The notes beneath the pieces were generated by a model that was given only the letters and a program-made list of their open reading frames with translations, made no database searches and was not told the DNA's origin. DNA of 64,000 nucleotides from Tetramitus jugosus (lineage: Eukaryota > Protista > Heterolobosea): positions 248,001 to 312,000 of the forward strand of contig OW569371.1 of the NCBI GenBank assembly GCA_937625935.1, in the 5' to 3' direction. The position numbers and the translations under genes were made by a program. This document shows, piece by piece, positions 54,735 to 61,494 of this stretch (position 1 is the stretch's first letter; each line of letters opens with the position of its first letter).

Positions 54735-57042
54735 ATGAGTACTCATTTGACGTCGATAGGGCACAACCTAGATGTTGCACTGAGTGCATTTTATGATTCT
54801 CTAAATAGCAACAACAACAACAATCAATCCTTCTATGGAGATTTGAGTGGAAAGAAATGGAATTCACCTTACAATGATACATCAAAGGGAGATGGCACAT
54901 GGTTCATTAACAAGAGGTTTGTATTGCTTGTGTTTTATCGAATACAGTGTTTGTGTGTTTGTGTAGTGGTCTGCTGAAGGTGAGAACAATTATGAGCTTT
55001 TTTGTCGTGTTTGAGACATTGCTCATGTTCTTTCTCAACGCCATAAAATTTTTTCCCGTGTGCTTTGGTGGTTGACCACGATCGAACACACTGAGATCAC
55101 ATGCACACACAAGATAAGGATTGCTAACAACATGAAATCAATTTGTATGTGAATTCTTCCAAATAATAGAGATTCAATCATGGTGCCCTCCATATCAAGC
55201 ATCTTTTTTGCGGCAGGTATTCTGCAGTGTATCATTCTCTTTATTGCCATTATTTGGCGGAGGAATATGCAGCCCATTAAGAGTCGAGGTGCATTGCTAA
55301 TTTTGATAGCTATGGTGTCTCAGTCCTATGTCATTATCAATTCTGCTGCACGGTTCATGGTTGGTCGATGGAGGTATCCCTGCTTCCTCTATTCCATCAT
55401 GTTCTCAGTTGTCATTCCGTTTGCCTTTTTGCCTGGTGTTTTGCGCATGTTTCGGTTGATTTACATTGTAAAGCTCAATAGCTTAAAGAAATTTGTGGCC
55501 AATATCAAGGGAACGACAGGGAATGAAGATGAGAACAATAAGCACAATAGTGTTGCACAGGTGAACAATCACAACAATAACAATAGCAACCATAACATGG
55601 GTCACACCAATGGCTTTGCTGTTTTTAAGAACAGACAACAACAGAGGACGTTTGCTCTGTGGAAGTTTTGGGTCTCCAACAAGTTTATTGTCCTGTGCTT
55701 TATAGTCAGTGTGGTTATTCATTTGGGCATTTGGGGAATTTTGGCGGGAACAAGCTCTGATCCTGCACTCTACTTTAGCTTTAGGAGCTCTTGTGGAATG
55801 AGTTCTGTGGACTCGTATGTCATTGTAGGTCAAGCATTTGTCTACATTGGTGTCAACTTGCTATTGCTGTTGTTCGCTATTGTGAAACGAGTGGAGGACA
55901 CCTGGTCCATTCGTATCGAGTCAGTAATTGTATTGGCTCAGTGGATTCTGTTCTTTGCAGTGTTTGTGCTGATCGCTGCTCTATGGTGGTACTTTTACAT
56001 ACAGGCAGAAAGATATTGGCCATATGGTTACTTTATGATTATGGCTTGCTTCATTGATATACTGTTCTCTGCTTGGATTCCGTTGATTCGCTCGTTTATG
56101 ATACCACAGAAGCGAGGATCAAAATTGGAACAAATTTTGACCATCCAAGACAGTTCAGGTGCCAATGTAGAGCAATTGAAGATTGTGTTGGAGGACACGG
56201 ATTTCAAGGAATCGTTCCGTATGTTTTGTGAAAAGAGTTTCTGTCCAGAGATGCTCCTGTTTTGGGAGGAAGCCAAGCAATATGAGCTTCTCAAGGAGGA
56301 CTATAGTCGAAGAGTGGCAGCCAAGAGCATTTTGGACAAGTATCTGTCTGTTGACGCTCCTTTGGAACTCAATCTTCCAAACAAGCAAATATTCATTCCT
56401 GAAATTACAGATGCCATTAATCAATATGAAGCAACCTTGCTCCAAGGAGTGTACGTTGGTACAAACATTCTCACAGAGATGGGAACAAACATTGCACTTT
56501 ATGTATTTAATAAGGAAGCCGCGCATCATAAGGAGAACTTTTTGTCTCGAATGACAAATATTGCAACATCTGAAGAACAAATTATTGCTGAGGCAGTACA
56601 GAGATATCAAAGCATTTTGCTAGATGCTAAAAAGGATGGAGATCATGAGGACAAAGGAGTCGAGGATGAGGCCATCGAGTGTACTCATGAAGTGAGCACA
56701 TCACATGAGGAGGATACTCACTCTGCGACAGATCAAATGTCCACCCACACAACTACCACATCCACAAATCCAAACTCCAGTACACCAAGCAAGAGAAAGG
56801 CTACAGTAGCCAAAATTAGGAAAAAGCTAAAGAGACCGCAAAGTACTAGGAATCTCTTGGAATCCAAGAACGAAAAGAAAGTAGAGAACAAGTTGCCAGA
56901 CGCTCTGTTCCATCGTCTGATTTTGCACACCGAGTTGGACATGATGGACATTTTTGCTCGATATCGTAATACTAGGCCATTCCGTAAACACATGGATAGA
57001 CTGAGAGAGGAAGTGAAACTCAAGGACATTGTTGTTGCCTAA
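54735..57042 (+). CDS. 7TM-RGS protein; exons 54735-54916 and 55170-57042
   Basis: About 7 hydrophobic segments ('QPIKSRG', 'DTWSIRIE') then RGS 'FKESFRMFCEKSFCPEMLLFWEE...ILDKYL..DAPLELNL...LFHRL....ELDMMDIFARY'. Intron 54917-55169 (GTTTGT...GCTAAC...TAG) is in frame. Confidence 0.85.
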
Positions 57043-57192
57043 GCGACGACCTCCATATCCTCATCGTAAATAAAACATCAAACGTCATCAGTCACCTAGA
57101 CCCAAAAGGTAATTTTAGTTTGAGCTGTGTGGCATCGGGAACAAAGGAACAAAGACATCAACAAACCAAACAACAATAACAACAACAACGAC

Positions 57193-58440
57193 ATGTTCCC
57201 TATTCTCTCTCTTCCTACTGATGTTGTTATTCATATCATCGGTTTTGTTGAGATTCAATCTCATGAGTTGACCATGCTCAATCCACCCGATTATCGCTGG
57301 CTCTCATGTTTCGGGAGACACAAAGAAGAACCATGTCGCTTCGTCTACTTGTTCCCCAGTGTTGTACTGAACTTGTCTGAAGTGAAAACTGGAGCGCCCA
57401 GTTACGGCGTAACTCGGAGCGACATTCTGTTATTCGCTCAAAATGCCAAGTACGTGCGATTCATTCTGGGGAGCCAGAACGCGAAATGTGCTGCAGATAG
57501 GATGCTAGATTACTGGGTGTTCTCTCAGCAAGGACAGTCAAGGCAGCGAGTAAATATCGAGGTGCAAGAGGATGATGGTTTCAAGTTCCTAACAGGCGAG
57601 AAATCAACCATGCTGGACGAGTTGATTCAACAAATGATAGTGCCATCGAGTCAGATTCGATCAAAACCAATTAACGAGCTCAATTTATTGTTGATTCGAT
57701 TGAGAGATAGAGCTGTGAAGCAAATTGTGTCGAGTGCAAATGTTCGACATCTTGTTCTTAATTACGACCACATTTCACCTTCAATTATGGATTGTTTCAA
57801 AGCATCGACAGTATCTAGTATTAAACAACTGACTCTGATTGTGTCGCCCAGTCTGAGAGAGGATGCTCTCGATTTACAATCAGTTTGGTCAAGTAGTTCA
57901 ATCGAGTCACTTTCAATTCTGAGTAGCGTAAGAAACGAGTATATTTTGAAACAGTTGCGATTTACATGTCAAAATGTGGATCCTTTGGCAGAGAGCACGC
58001 ATTTAACAACATTGAACATGCCGCTTGTGGATCTTAACAGATCAATGTGCTCTGTTTTACTTCGAAATCAGAGTATTCGAACACTGTGTATTGGAGTGAA
58101 CCTAGAATCAAGCTCCTTGTCAGGCTGTGGATGGAAGCGAAACCATAAGGCAATTTGTTCAATGGAAGAGCATCCTATACGAGAGTTCATTCTAAATTAT
58201 GAATGTATTCGTAATTTGACCTTGTTCTTCAATGTATTACTAGAGGTCGATGTGTACTATATTATTCAATTGATATCAAATCGACAGAAGCCCAAACCAG
58301 TCGACTCGTTCAATCACATTACAATCGTTGCCTTAGAGTATCAGTATAAAGATCGCATCGGTGAGTACAGGCAACGTGCAATGCGTGTAAGAGCAGATTG
58401 CAACACGATGGTTGAATTTAGAACTTATCATTCACAATAA
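57193..58440 (+). CDS. F-box + leucine-rich-repeat-like protein
   Basis: 'ILSLPTDVVIHIIGFV' F-box start; LxxLxL repeats (IKQLTL, IESLSI, LTTLNM, IRTLCI, IRNLTL). Confidence 0.65.
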   Translation: MFPILSLPTDVVIHIIGFVEIQSHELTMLNPPDYRWLSCFGRHKEEPCRFVYLFPSVVLNLSEVKTGAPSYGVTRSDILLFAQNAKYVRFILGSQNAKCAADRMLDYWVFSQQGQSRQRVNIEVQEDDGFKFLTGEKSTMLDELIQQMIVPSSQIRSKPINELNLLLIRLRDRAVKQIVSSANVRHLVLNYDHISPSIMDCFKASTVSSIKQLTLIVSPSLREDALDLQSVWSSSSIESLSILSSVRNEYILKQLRFTCQNVDPLAESTHLTTLNMPLVDLNRSMCSVLLRNQSIRTLCIGVNLESSSLSGCGWKRNHKAICSMEEHPIREFILNYECIRNLTLFFNVLLEVDVYYIIQLISNRQKPKPVDSFNHITIVALEYQYKDRIGEYRQRAMRVRADCNTMVEFRTYHSQ

Positions 58441-59612: not shown

Positions 59613-60989
59613 ATGAGAGAGGAAAAGAATTGTAAAATAGTGATACTGGGTGGAAGTTCTACAGGGAAAACAACCCTCTTTCGTCACTTCAAGTCCTTGT
59701 TCAAGGATCATGATAGTTGTTGGGAGGACAGGCAGTGCGGAACACTGGCACTGTCCAATACGTTACTGCTGTTGAGACTTGCCCTGTTCTTAACAAAGAA
59801 GGAAATTGTTGAAAGTGAGAAAAATCAGGATGTTGCTTCTCAATTAATCTTGATGACTCGTTCTGATATCATCGATCTAGAACCTTGCTTCATCTCGTCC
59901 CATTTCATCGAACAACTGGCAATATTGTGGAAAAGCGAGCGAAAACTAAGAGAATTTGTTCGTGAGGAGCAATACATGGATTTCAGTATCGCCGAACGAG
60001 TACATGAGAGCTTGTATGTATTGGATCGATTGAGTCATGTTTACAAAGAAATTCAATGTGGTCGTGTGTCCAGAGAAATTGTTCTTCGAAGTGCACAAAC
60101 GACAATGAAACTACAGAGTGCATATGGTTACTGGAAAGGCATGAACATCACTATTGTTGACACTCCAGATGTACAACACGATCTAGACACAAACTATAGA
60201 ATGTTAAGTGGAGCTTCCTGTGCGATATTATGTGTTTCACTGGTTGATTATTACAAGTATTGCTATGATGATAGAACAATGAATAGAACTGTGGAATCCA
60301 TGGGAATTTTGTCTGACATCTGTGTTTCGAGTCATTACAACCCATCTGATTGTCATCTCGTTTTGATATTCACGCACTTTGACCAATTTAAGAGTTCATT
60401 ACGATACAAATCACTCACAGAAGTGTTTCCAGAGTACAACCCCAGTCAGTCTCACGTATCATTATCATTATCATTACTGGAGAGAGAGCTTTCTGATCAC
60501 GAAGAGGAGGGGAGTTCTGGTTTGAAGGATAACTCAACGAAGGATCTGCCAGAGATAGATATATCTCCGGTTCCCGATGATGTTCAGTGTTACATCTTTA
60601 CCTTTCTTCATCCGATCGAATTGGGAATACTCAGTCTCGCGAACAGTCACTACTACAGGTTAGTAAACTCCGATGAAGTTTGGAGTTGTTTATGCCACAA
60701 GTTTGAACCTAACCTGAAAAGATCAGAGGTTCTCCAGGTCAACAAAGACTGTTTCTATTCGTATAGAAGGGATCACTTATTCAAACACTACTTCGTTGTG
60801 GGAGGATATCAGAGCTATCTGGCTTTACAATACATGATACAGGAATTCTTAAATCTTATCCCAAAGAAAGATATGAGGATAGATGTTATTGTAAGTAACT
60901 CAATGGATATCATCAAGTCCCAGAAAAACTTGAAGACCCTTCTCACTTCTTTGTCCATCAGAACGTACTCAACATCAACGAACCAATAA
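59613..60989 (+). CDS. Divergent G-protein alpha-like protein with internal F-box insertion
   Basis: 'KIVILGGSSTGKTTL', helical domain, 'IVLRSAQTT', 'IVDTPDVQ', 'ILCVSLVDY...YDD..MNRTVESM', 'LVLIFTHFD', 'FPEY'. F-box 'VPDDVQCYIFTFLHPIELGILSLANSHYYRLVNSDEVWSCLC' follows, then G-alpha 'ALQYMIQEFLNL'. Confidence 0.8.
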   Translation: MREEKNCKIVILGGSSTGKTTLFRHFKSLFKDHDSCWEDRQCGTLALSNTLLLLRLALFLTKKEIVESEKNQDVASQLILMTRSDIIDLEPCFISSHFIEQLAILWKSERKLREFVREEQYMDFSIAERVHESLYVLDRLSHVYKEIQCGRVSREIVLRSAQTTMKLQSAYGYWKGMNITIVDTPDVQHDLDTNYRMLSGASCAILCVSLVDYYKYCYDDRTMNRTVESMGILSDICVSSHYNPSDCHLVLIFTHFDQFKSSLRYKSLTEVFPEYNPSQSHVSLSLSLLERELSDHEEEGSSGLKDNSTKDLPEIDISPVPDDVQCYIFTFLHPIELGILSLANSHYYRLVNSDEVWSCLCHKFEPNLKRSEVLQVNKDCFYSYRRDHLFKHYFVVGGYQSYLALQYMIQEFLNLIPKKDMRIDVIVSNSMDIIKSQKNLKTLLTSLSIRTYSTSTNQ

Positions 60990-61494
60990 GTTTTCAACCA
61001 AAGAGAACAAAAAGAAGCTTAAATGTCTCCTGAGAACAGATGATGGCATGAATGAAGCAGTCAAACGACAGAGAACCACCAATGATACTGAATTTGATGA
61101 AACAATTGAAATTTGTTTTGAACTTGACCTGGACACATGACCAACAATCATTGAGTTTTGTGACACTCGAGAGTTTCACATGCAAAAGAATCAATCAATT
61201 CAAATTCAATCTATTGCTCATGTCCAATAAGAACACTAAAACGATTAACAGACAGCTCATTGCATTATCTCATTTAAATCTGCATTCATCAAATCACAGA
61301 CAACGCTTTTCGTTGCTCTGACTTTCTCATTGTGCGAGGGTCTGCGAATCTAACCCTATTTTGATCCTCCCAGCACATCAAAAAAAGTCCCGAAAGGATC
61401 ACATCGCGTGAACTTTTGAGAGGTCAGAGGAAGGATAAATTGATCCTGAGAGAAAAGAAACAATTTGTTCAGTATTGATCCAAAAGTCGAAAGC

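Follow-up and report, generated by a model that had tools for sequence, protein, structure and literature searches.

What is a G-alpha protein doing with an F-box in the middle of its GTPase domain? The question is raised by a gene at positions 59613-60989, on the forward strand, of a 64,000-nucleotide stretch of Tetramitus jugosus DNA (contig OW569371.1, positions 248,001 to 312,000; hereafter the window). The G-alpha subunit and the F-box are two of the best-studied eukaryotic signalling modules and are normally linked only indirectly. An earlier reading of the window, made from its letters alone (the sequence-only reading), had described the gene product as a G-alpha-like pseudo-GTPase in which an F-box interrupts the Ras-like domain and G-alpha sequence then resumes, and had suggested that it serves as the substrate-recognition part of an SCF (Skp1-cullin-F-box) ubiquitin ligase. 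On the arrangement itself, hidden Markov model (HMM) and hhalign comparisons, an AlphaFold2 model and VIA-align superpositions agree with that reading; the function proposed for it has to be weighed against several alternatives.

An F-box nested in a predicted G-alpha fold

The protein encoded at 59613-60989 matches the Pfam G-alpha family PF00503 at an E-value of 6.3e-27 (95 bits, cut-off 48.8; residues 3-295 on profile positions 18-299 of 333), and a phmmer search of the PDB with the same protein retrieves Gαo, Gαi and Gαt at E-values of 4e-14 to about 1e-13 over residues 4-282. The loop between helices αG and α4 holds an insert of about 125 residues that passes from a disordered linker through the F-box to two linker helices. 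When three family members, combined in a profile, are aligned with a profile of 16 canonical G-alphas, the alignment has an E-value of 3e-46 and ends at the 'FP[ED]' motif in template column 298, while the tail that follows the F-box in three family members, aligned alone, falls on canonical columns 299-352, which comprise α4, β6 with TCATD, and α5 (hhalign E-value 2.5e-4, probability 43%). Because the pieces before and after the insert are contiguous on the canonical G-alpha profile, the F-box is nested and not merely C-terminal. Similarly, a canonical G-alpha HMM produces separate matches before and after the insert in three less degenerate paralogs from the same genome (for example, HMM positions 12-294 and then 287-348), and one same-genome paralog retains a T-C-A-I-D β6 motif downstream of its F-box. 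Both PF00503 and the F-box-like family PF12937 score above their Pfam gathering cut-offs.

The AlphaFold2 model of the 458-residue protein, based on a 45-sequence alignment, has a mean predicted local distance difference test score (pLDDT) of 87.4 and a predicted template-modelling score of 0.85. It runs from β1 to αG (residues 5-263) through a disordered stretch (287-310), the F-box helices (322-364) and two further helices (370-396) into α4, β6 and α5. In the VIA-align superposition, model residues 5-451 fall on Gαi1 residues 32-347 with a Z-score of 30-31 and a root-mean-square deviation (rmsd) of about 3.0 Å, with 310-330 residues aligned, nearly the whole target; Gαs, Gα13, Gαq and plant GPA1 are superposed as well as Gαi1, and a Foldseek comparison of the full model with G-alphas gives template-modelling scores, by target, of 0.78-0.82. 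In both the AlphaFold2 model and the VIA-align superposition, it takes the tail after the F-box to complete the G-alpha fold. The modelling confirms, at the level of predicted structure, a complete G-alpha fold with Ras-like and helical domains through β6 and α5, so that the flanks of the insert model as G-alpha, and the break in the profile alignment and the structural superposition both put the insertion in the αG-α4 loop just after FPEY, as had been read from the sequence.

The F-box and its predicted partner

Pfam assigns residues 321-362 (positions 60573-60698) to PF12937 at an E-value of 7.4e-6 (26.1 bits, cut-off 24.3), and the segment is modelled as a three-helix fold, in agreement with the complete F-box that had been proposed at about 60561-60695. 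A profile built from 16 family inserts and run against solved F-box chains matches FBXL5 (1.1e-9), FBXO3 (1.6e-9), Skp2 (5.7e-6) and Fbw7 (1.2e-5), and also FBXO4 and β-TrCP. Folded alone, the insert reaches a pLDDT of 91.5, and the top 50 rows of a Foldseek search with this model are all F-box proteins, nearly all of them solved with Skp1, at E-values that are weak (at least 0.06), the domain being short. Skp2 fits the insert model with an rmsd of 1.5 Å across 43 residues, and Cdc4 and FBXO3 align across 82-90 residues, the two extra linker helices included. The model thereby suggests that the two helices after the F-box correspond to the linker between the F-box and the recognition domain of Cdc4 and FBXO3.

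The genome encodes a 168-residue Skp1 (L021) and at least seven cullins. The predicted complex of this Skp1 with the excised insert (residues 308-400) scored 0.87 against 0.01 for the best control, a separation to be read with the possibility that the model recalls solved Skp1-F-box complexes; of 78 solved complexes 51 attain the mark of 0.87, as do 2 of 108 mismatched pairs. Prediction runs share at least 88% of contacts, the partner pLDDT is at least 63, and the predicted Skp1 interface on the protein comprises residues 314-348. We take this result as a likeness to Skp1-F-box complexes and not as proof that the copy at 59613-60989 binds Skp1.

A G-alpha subfamily of Heterolobosea

Within the genome surveyed (26.35 Mb in 56 contigs), six loci have the same order of G-alpha (with a profile match ending near position 280 of 333), F-box and tail, and they lie on the contigs that we number C28 (the present gene), C3, C50, C13 (two loci) and C1. 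An exhaustive search of 1.8 billion cluster representatives with a profile of the F-box plus tail returned 30 proteins at E-values of at most 1e-3. Pfam places a G-alpha and then an F-box in 17 of the 20 matches scanned (in two of these, the fragments P0032 and P0036, the G-alpha scores less than the gathering cut-off), which puts the nested layout in at least 17 clusters. Named relatives are found in Naegleria lovaniensis (XP_044552494.1), Willaertia magna (KAL9652580.1 and KAL9656181.1) and Acrasis kona (KAL0489080.1), all of them Heterolobosea; they are annotated as hypothetical, XP_044552494.1 carrying the label 'F-box domain-containing protein'. The sequence-only reading had known of no characterised protein with this architecture and none was found, the homologues already in public databases being uncharacterised.

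A word-indexed homology search with the 59613-60989 protein gave no match, and one that used the C-terminal part of the N. lovaniensis protein returned only that protein itself; both outcomes reflect limits of the index, as the exhaustive profile search found the family. The ESM Atlas, searched by features and by shape, returned generic F-box or generic G-alpha clusters only.

To place the insertion among G-alphas, a maximum-likelihood tree was computed without any of the insert columns, from 323 columns of the G-alpha core. On this tree the F-box label requires 2 changes, compared with a mean of 13.8 for shuffled labels (0 of 500 shuffles were as low). A tree constrained to a single F-box clade was 11.7 log-likelihood units better than the free quick search, and a single origin is not rejected because the constrained tree fits no worse (approximately unbiased test, p-AU 0.80); the insertion thus probably arose once. 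The 59613-60989 protein groups with the C3 paralog, P0031 and P0029 on a branch of 2.28, the longest among the genome's own F-box-bearing paralogs, and it is, judged by its sequence, the most degenerate copy. On these comparisons it is a member of a G-alpha subfamily, apparently specific to Heterolobosea, with an F-box in the αG-α4 loop.

One further protein, P0002 (EukProt gene11385-4552_t; 798 residues), has two G-alphas in tandem, of which the first is degenerate and the second is near-canonical (DTGGQ, NKHD) and contains the nested F-box.

G motifs and catalytic state

Alignment with canonical G-alphas bears out the motifs read earlier from the sequence (LRSAQTT, a G3 beginning DTP, THFD, SNSM and an intact P-loop). 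The protein keeps the P-loop GGSSTGKTT, the switch I threonine (Thr164), the G3 aspartate (D183) and the G4 aspartate (D257). The position of the catalytic switch I arginine is occupied by Ala161 and that of the switch I glycine, which contacts RGS domains, by Met165; DxGGQ has become DTPDV, with loss of the catalytic glutamine; the switch II motif RNERKKW is unrecognisable; and NKxD and TCATD have become THFD and SNSMD. The N-terminal helix αN, which binds Gβγ and carries the lipidation site, is missing as had been proposed: β1 begins at residue 5. An exon for this helix upstream of the gene is unlikely because an in-frame stop lies 8 codons 5' of the ATG (the open frame is 465 codons long) and a divergent gene on the opposite strand starts 157 bp from the gene start.

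With the catalytic arginine, the catalytic glutamine and switch II gone, the protein, as far as its motifs tell, cannot hydrolyse GTP by the known mechanism nor make a γ-phosphate-sensing switch. The term pseudo-GTPase suits this copy, whose motifs are lost, but not the family, in which many members keep DxGGQ and NKxD. The capture of RGS proteins that the sequence-only reading had envisaged is unlikely, for this copy, to use the canonical switch interface, given Met165 in place of the switch I glycine and the loss of switch II; a change of the same glycine to serine yields the classical RGS-insensitive G-alpha (PMC9283941).

Elsewhere in the family, DxGGQ is retained in about half of the members, G4 reads NKxD or T[HKN]xD (the latter in about half), and the G5 consensus is usually x-N-[CAS]-[LI]-D. 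The motif DTGGQ is present in the C3 paralog, P0029 and P0031, and the catalytic arginine in P0031 and in one of the two C13 paralogs (C13a). Several members begin with Met-Gly, which is a possible N-myristoylation site. The F-box, the helical linker, the tail and a K-x-Y-F-x-x-G-G motif are well conserved, in the 59613-60989 copy too.

Proposed role and rival explanations

We consider it somewhat more probable than its contrary that the G-alpha-like domain acts as the substrate-recognition module of an SCF ligase. The surface loop between αG and α4 of the Ras-like domain would have received an F-box with its short helical linker, probably in a single event, with the complete G-alpha fold preserved around the insert, and the insert would be tethered by a floppy linker on its N-terminal side and by a high-confidence helical linker running into α4 on its C-terminal side. 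By docking on Skp1, a step that we infer with support in silico, the F-box would make the G-alpha-like domain part of a Cul1-based SCF. Those members that begin with Met-Gly and have intact GTPase motifs might then recruit partners at membranes by nucleotide state, and the 59613-60989 copy would most likely be a soluble, constitutive, catalytically dead adaptor.

An SCF receptor with the G-alpha domain as its recognition module is favoured because the F-box is conserved and Skp1-competent in silico, because the order of tether, F-box, helical linker and α4/β6/α5 reproduces the geometry of known receptors, and because the degenerate 59613-60989 copy keeps exactly the F-box, linker and tail while losing the switch machinery. 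The adaptor role put forward by the sequence-only reading is thus consistent with the F-box profile, the Cdc4/Fbw7-like fold of the linker and the Skp1 prediction, all of which are in-silico results.

Several points weigh against this role. The surfaces with which canonical G-alphas meet their partners (switch II, αN and the switch I glycine) are degenerate in this copy, and F-box proteins can act outside the SCF. The second F-box family in Pfam, PF00646, scores 20.2 bits, just below its cut-off of 20.5. The result with Skp1, although far above its control, was obtained on the excised insert only and may be the model's memory of solved Skp1-F-box complexes. Finally, contigs from soil metatranscriptomes, at 95-99% identity, cover 59739-60061, 60213-60549 and 60636-61027 and are weak evidence of expression, as RNA libraries may contain DNA.

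In a more specific form, which is tentative and which we think unlikely as a whole, the family would consist of G-protein-gated SCF adaptors, sited at membranes and loaded with GTP by themselves or by a receptor, that present effectors, RGS proteins with seven transmembrane segments (7TM-RGS) or receptors to Skp1-Cul1, the 59613-60989 protein being a soluble, one-state member.

Of the alternatives to an SCF substrate receptor, the one that survives best, although we regard it as rather improbable, is that the G-alpha is a working signalling module and that the F-box serves only its own turnover, through auto-ubiquitylation by the SCF, or acts as a tether to Skp1 outside the SCF. Many members keep the P-loop, DxGGQ, NKxD and the Met-Gly start and could be real switches, and F-box proteins are often unstable by auto-ubiquitylation, some of them working with Skp1 outside the SCF. 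However, the 59613-60989 copy has no switch machinery, yet its F-box, helical linker and tail are well conserved, and the arrangement of F-box, helical linker and domain mirrors that of substrate receptors.

Less probable again is that the gene is a decaying, functionless paralog within a functional family and is no longer under selection. Its long branch and the loss of most G motifs and of the N-terminal helix would fit such a decay, whereas the 458-codon frame is intact, the AlphaFold2 fold is very confident, the F-box and the K-x-Y-F-x-x-G-G motif are conserved, and fragments of the gene are found in RNA libraries. Moreover, the strain or allele variants among the contigs comprise 16 synonymous and 9 non-synonymous changes, a small sample that suggests purifying selection; four of the nine are conservative changes in the core (I232V, D246N, K63E, V74I), and the other five are confined to the disordered linker and the nine residues at the C-terminus.

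We reject as practically negligible the explanation by artefact, in which the assembly would have fused a G-alpha gene with an F-box gene into a chimera, or splicing would take an F-box-coding intron out of the mRNA, since the nested order recurs in six loci of the genome and, beyond it, in four named assemblies and transcript sets, independent-run contigs of the same organism, 100% identical, overlap to tile the whole gene without joints, RNA-library contigs cover 60213-60549 and 60636-61027, and the G-alpha fold is incomplete without the post-F-box tail. None of the aligned contigs has a splice joint across 59613-60989, which agrees with an exonic F-box segment, although no RNA-library contig bridges 60549-60636.

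Should the F-box function in an SCF receptor as we propose, the state of a G protein would be convertible directly into ubiquitylation, and a third independent GTPase domain would be in use as a cullin-ligase adaptor, after RhoBTB and the ARF fusions discussed below; if the adaptors were gated as well, heterotrimeric G proteins would have an output that is not known from any organism. The claim that joins G-alpha and F-box is checkable by simple pull-downs and nucleotide-binding assays. Apart from function, the fusion is conserved and structurally coherent throughout a lineage of protists to which the genus of the brain-eating amoeba belongs, and it shows that a whole domain can be accommodated in the αG-α4 loop. 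The G domains of the family also form a natural gradation, some near-canonical and others fully degenerate, that lends itself to studies of how pseudo-GTPases originate.

Features of the gene and its surroundings

The gene is a single intronless open reading frame (ORF) of 458 codons, and its features are collected in Table 1.

Table 1. Features of the gene at 59613-60989, in window positions with residue numbers of the predicted protein in brackets.
Feature	Positions	Strand	Basis
Whole gene, G-alpha with nested F-box	59613..60989	+	Pfam, AlphaFold2, VIA-align; contigs without splice joints
G1 / P-loop GGSSTGKTT, intact (13-21)	59649..59675	+	Alignment with canonical G-alphas
All-helical domain (33-159)	59709..60089	+	AlphaFold2 secondary structure, Pfam G-alpha, VIA-align
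Switch I remnant LRSAQTTMK (158-166)	60084..60110	+	Alignment with canonical G-alphas
Degenerate G3 / switch II (183-194)	60159..60194	+	Alignment with canonical G-alphas
G4 remnant THFD (254-257)	60372..60383	+	Alignment with canonical G-alphas
FPEY (272-275), end of αG region, last canonical G-alpha residues before the insert	60426..60437	+	PDB search, profile and sequence alignments
Disordered acidic/Ser-rich linker (287-310, pLDDT <50)	60471..60542	+	AlphaFold2
F-box (321-364; helices 322-329, 334-341, 345-351, 354-364)	60573..60704	+	Pfam, profile against solved F-boxes, Foldseek, predicted Skp1 interface
Two helices (370-380, 386-396) joining the F-box to α4, ending in family motif K-x-Y-F-x-x-G-G	60720..60800	+	Alignment, AlphaFold2, Foldseek
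Resumed G-alpha fold: α4 (398-413), β6 (423-427), α5 (433-456)	60804..60980	+	hhalign, AlphaFold2, VIA-align
G5 remnant SNSMD (428-432)	60894..60908	+	Alignment with canonical G-alphas

A second version of the sequence is present among contigs from a run of the same organism; it differs at 8 of 114 letters at 60276-60389 and at 15 of 237 at 60914-61150, has a 3-nt deletion at 61044, and could represent a second allele or haplotype or a co-cultured strain.

Upstream, the gene at 55180-57042 (+) encodes a 620-residue protein with several N-terminal hydrophobic segments and an RGS match that covers profile positions 3-71 of 117 only. It appears to be a 7TM-RGS protein of the plant/Naegleria type, and the second half of its RGS domain may be displaced by an insertion. 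The intervening 437-codon ORF at 57127-58440 (+) has an N-terminal 'LSLPTDVVIHIIGF' motif resembling an F-box; a Pfam scan of this ORF gave no match above noise. The neighbourhood of 7TM-RGS, F-box-LRR (leucine-rich repeat) and G-alpha/F-box genes was considered as functional evidence and rejected, and the support that the sequence-only reading might draw from the adjoining RGS gene is weak: the genome holds at least 130 RGS-domain matches, and none lies near the other five G-alpha/F-box paralogs. On the contig of the relative P0029, an LRR gene adjoins and an RGS gene lies 5 kb off, and comparison of that LRR gene with the 57127-58440 ORF found no significant similarity. For its 26 Mb, the genome has a very large set of G-protein components, with many of the RGS matches in ORFs of 2000-2500 residues and with roughly 25 G-alpha genes in all, several of them intron-split.

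A dispersed repeat of about 62-75 nt, with at least 40 copies in the genome at 78-92% identity, lies at 61171-61233, 180 nt downstream of the stop codon. Its contig depth is 84-103 in soil metatranscriptomes, where the flanks reach 3-9, and, in a run of the organism, about 1500, with loose ends on either side. Searches for an Rfam family or a tRNA match found neither, and the repeat may be a small non-coding RNA gene family or an element resembling a miniature inverted-repeat transposable element.

Comparison with known systems

G-alpha probably derives from ARF-like GTPases. No G-alpha with an F-box was described in the literature that our search covered; a survey of G-alpha architectures in heteroloboseans, reportedly made by Anantharaman et al. 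(2011, Gene 475:63), may contain an earlier mention. For Naegleria fowleri, 13 Gα proteins have been listed, without mention of an F-box or of ubiquitin (PMC9283941). ARF-family GTPases have been recruited recurrently into ubiquitin circuits, with F-box or BTB fusions among them (PMC8358228), and in RhoBTB proteins an atypical Rho domain is joined to Cullin-3-binding BTB domains (PMC10413933). That a cullin adaptor may contain a GTPase domain is therefore an existing concept, but not for G-alpha, nor as a nested insert.

Canonical G-alphas, such as Gαi1, Gαs and the Gα of Naegleria fowleri (PMC9283941), share with the 59613-60989 protein the predicted Ras-like and helical fold, the P-loop, the switch I threonine and the G3 and G4 aspartates. 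They are without the insert of about 125 residues that carries the F-box, and have the αN helix, lipidation, the catalytic arginine and glutamine, switch II, NKxD and TCAT, all of which are lost here. SCF receptors such as Cdc4, Fbw7, β-TrCP and FBXO3 are alike in F-box profile and fold, the linker helices superpose on those of Cdc4 and FBXO3, and a Skp1 interface is predicted for the present protein; in those receptors, however, the recognition domain is WD40, LRR or ApaG and the F-box is N-terminal, whereas here the recognition domain would be a G-alpha fold with the F-box internal, in a loop.

RhoBTB (PMC10413933) follows the same logic, with a GTPase or pseudo-GTPase domain and a cullin-adaptor module in one chain, but it joins Rho to BTB and Cul3 in tandem, while the present family joins G-alpha to an F-box, and by prediction to Skp1 and Cul1, in a nested arrangement, and the two fusions are not homologous. 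Similarly, the ARF fusions to F-box or BTB domains and TRIM23, a RING plus ARF protein (PMC8358228), are terminal fusions of small ARF domains, whereas the heterolobosean proteins bring a full G-alpha, helical domain included, with the F-box inside the G domain.

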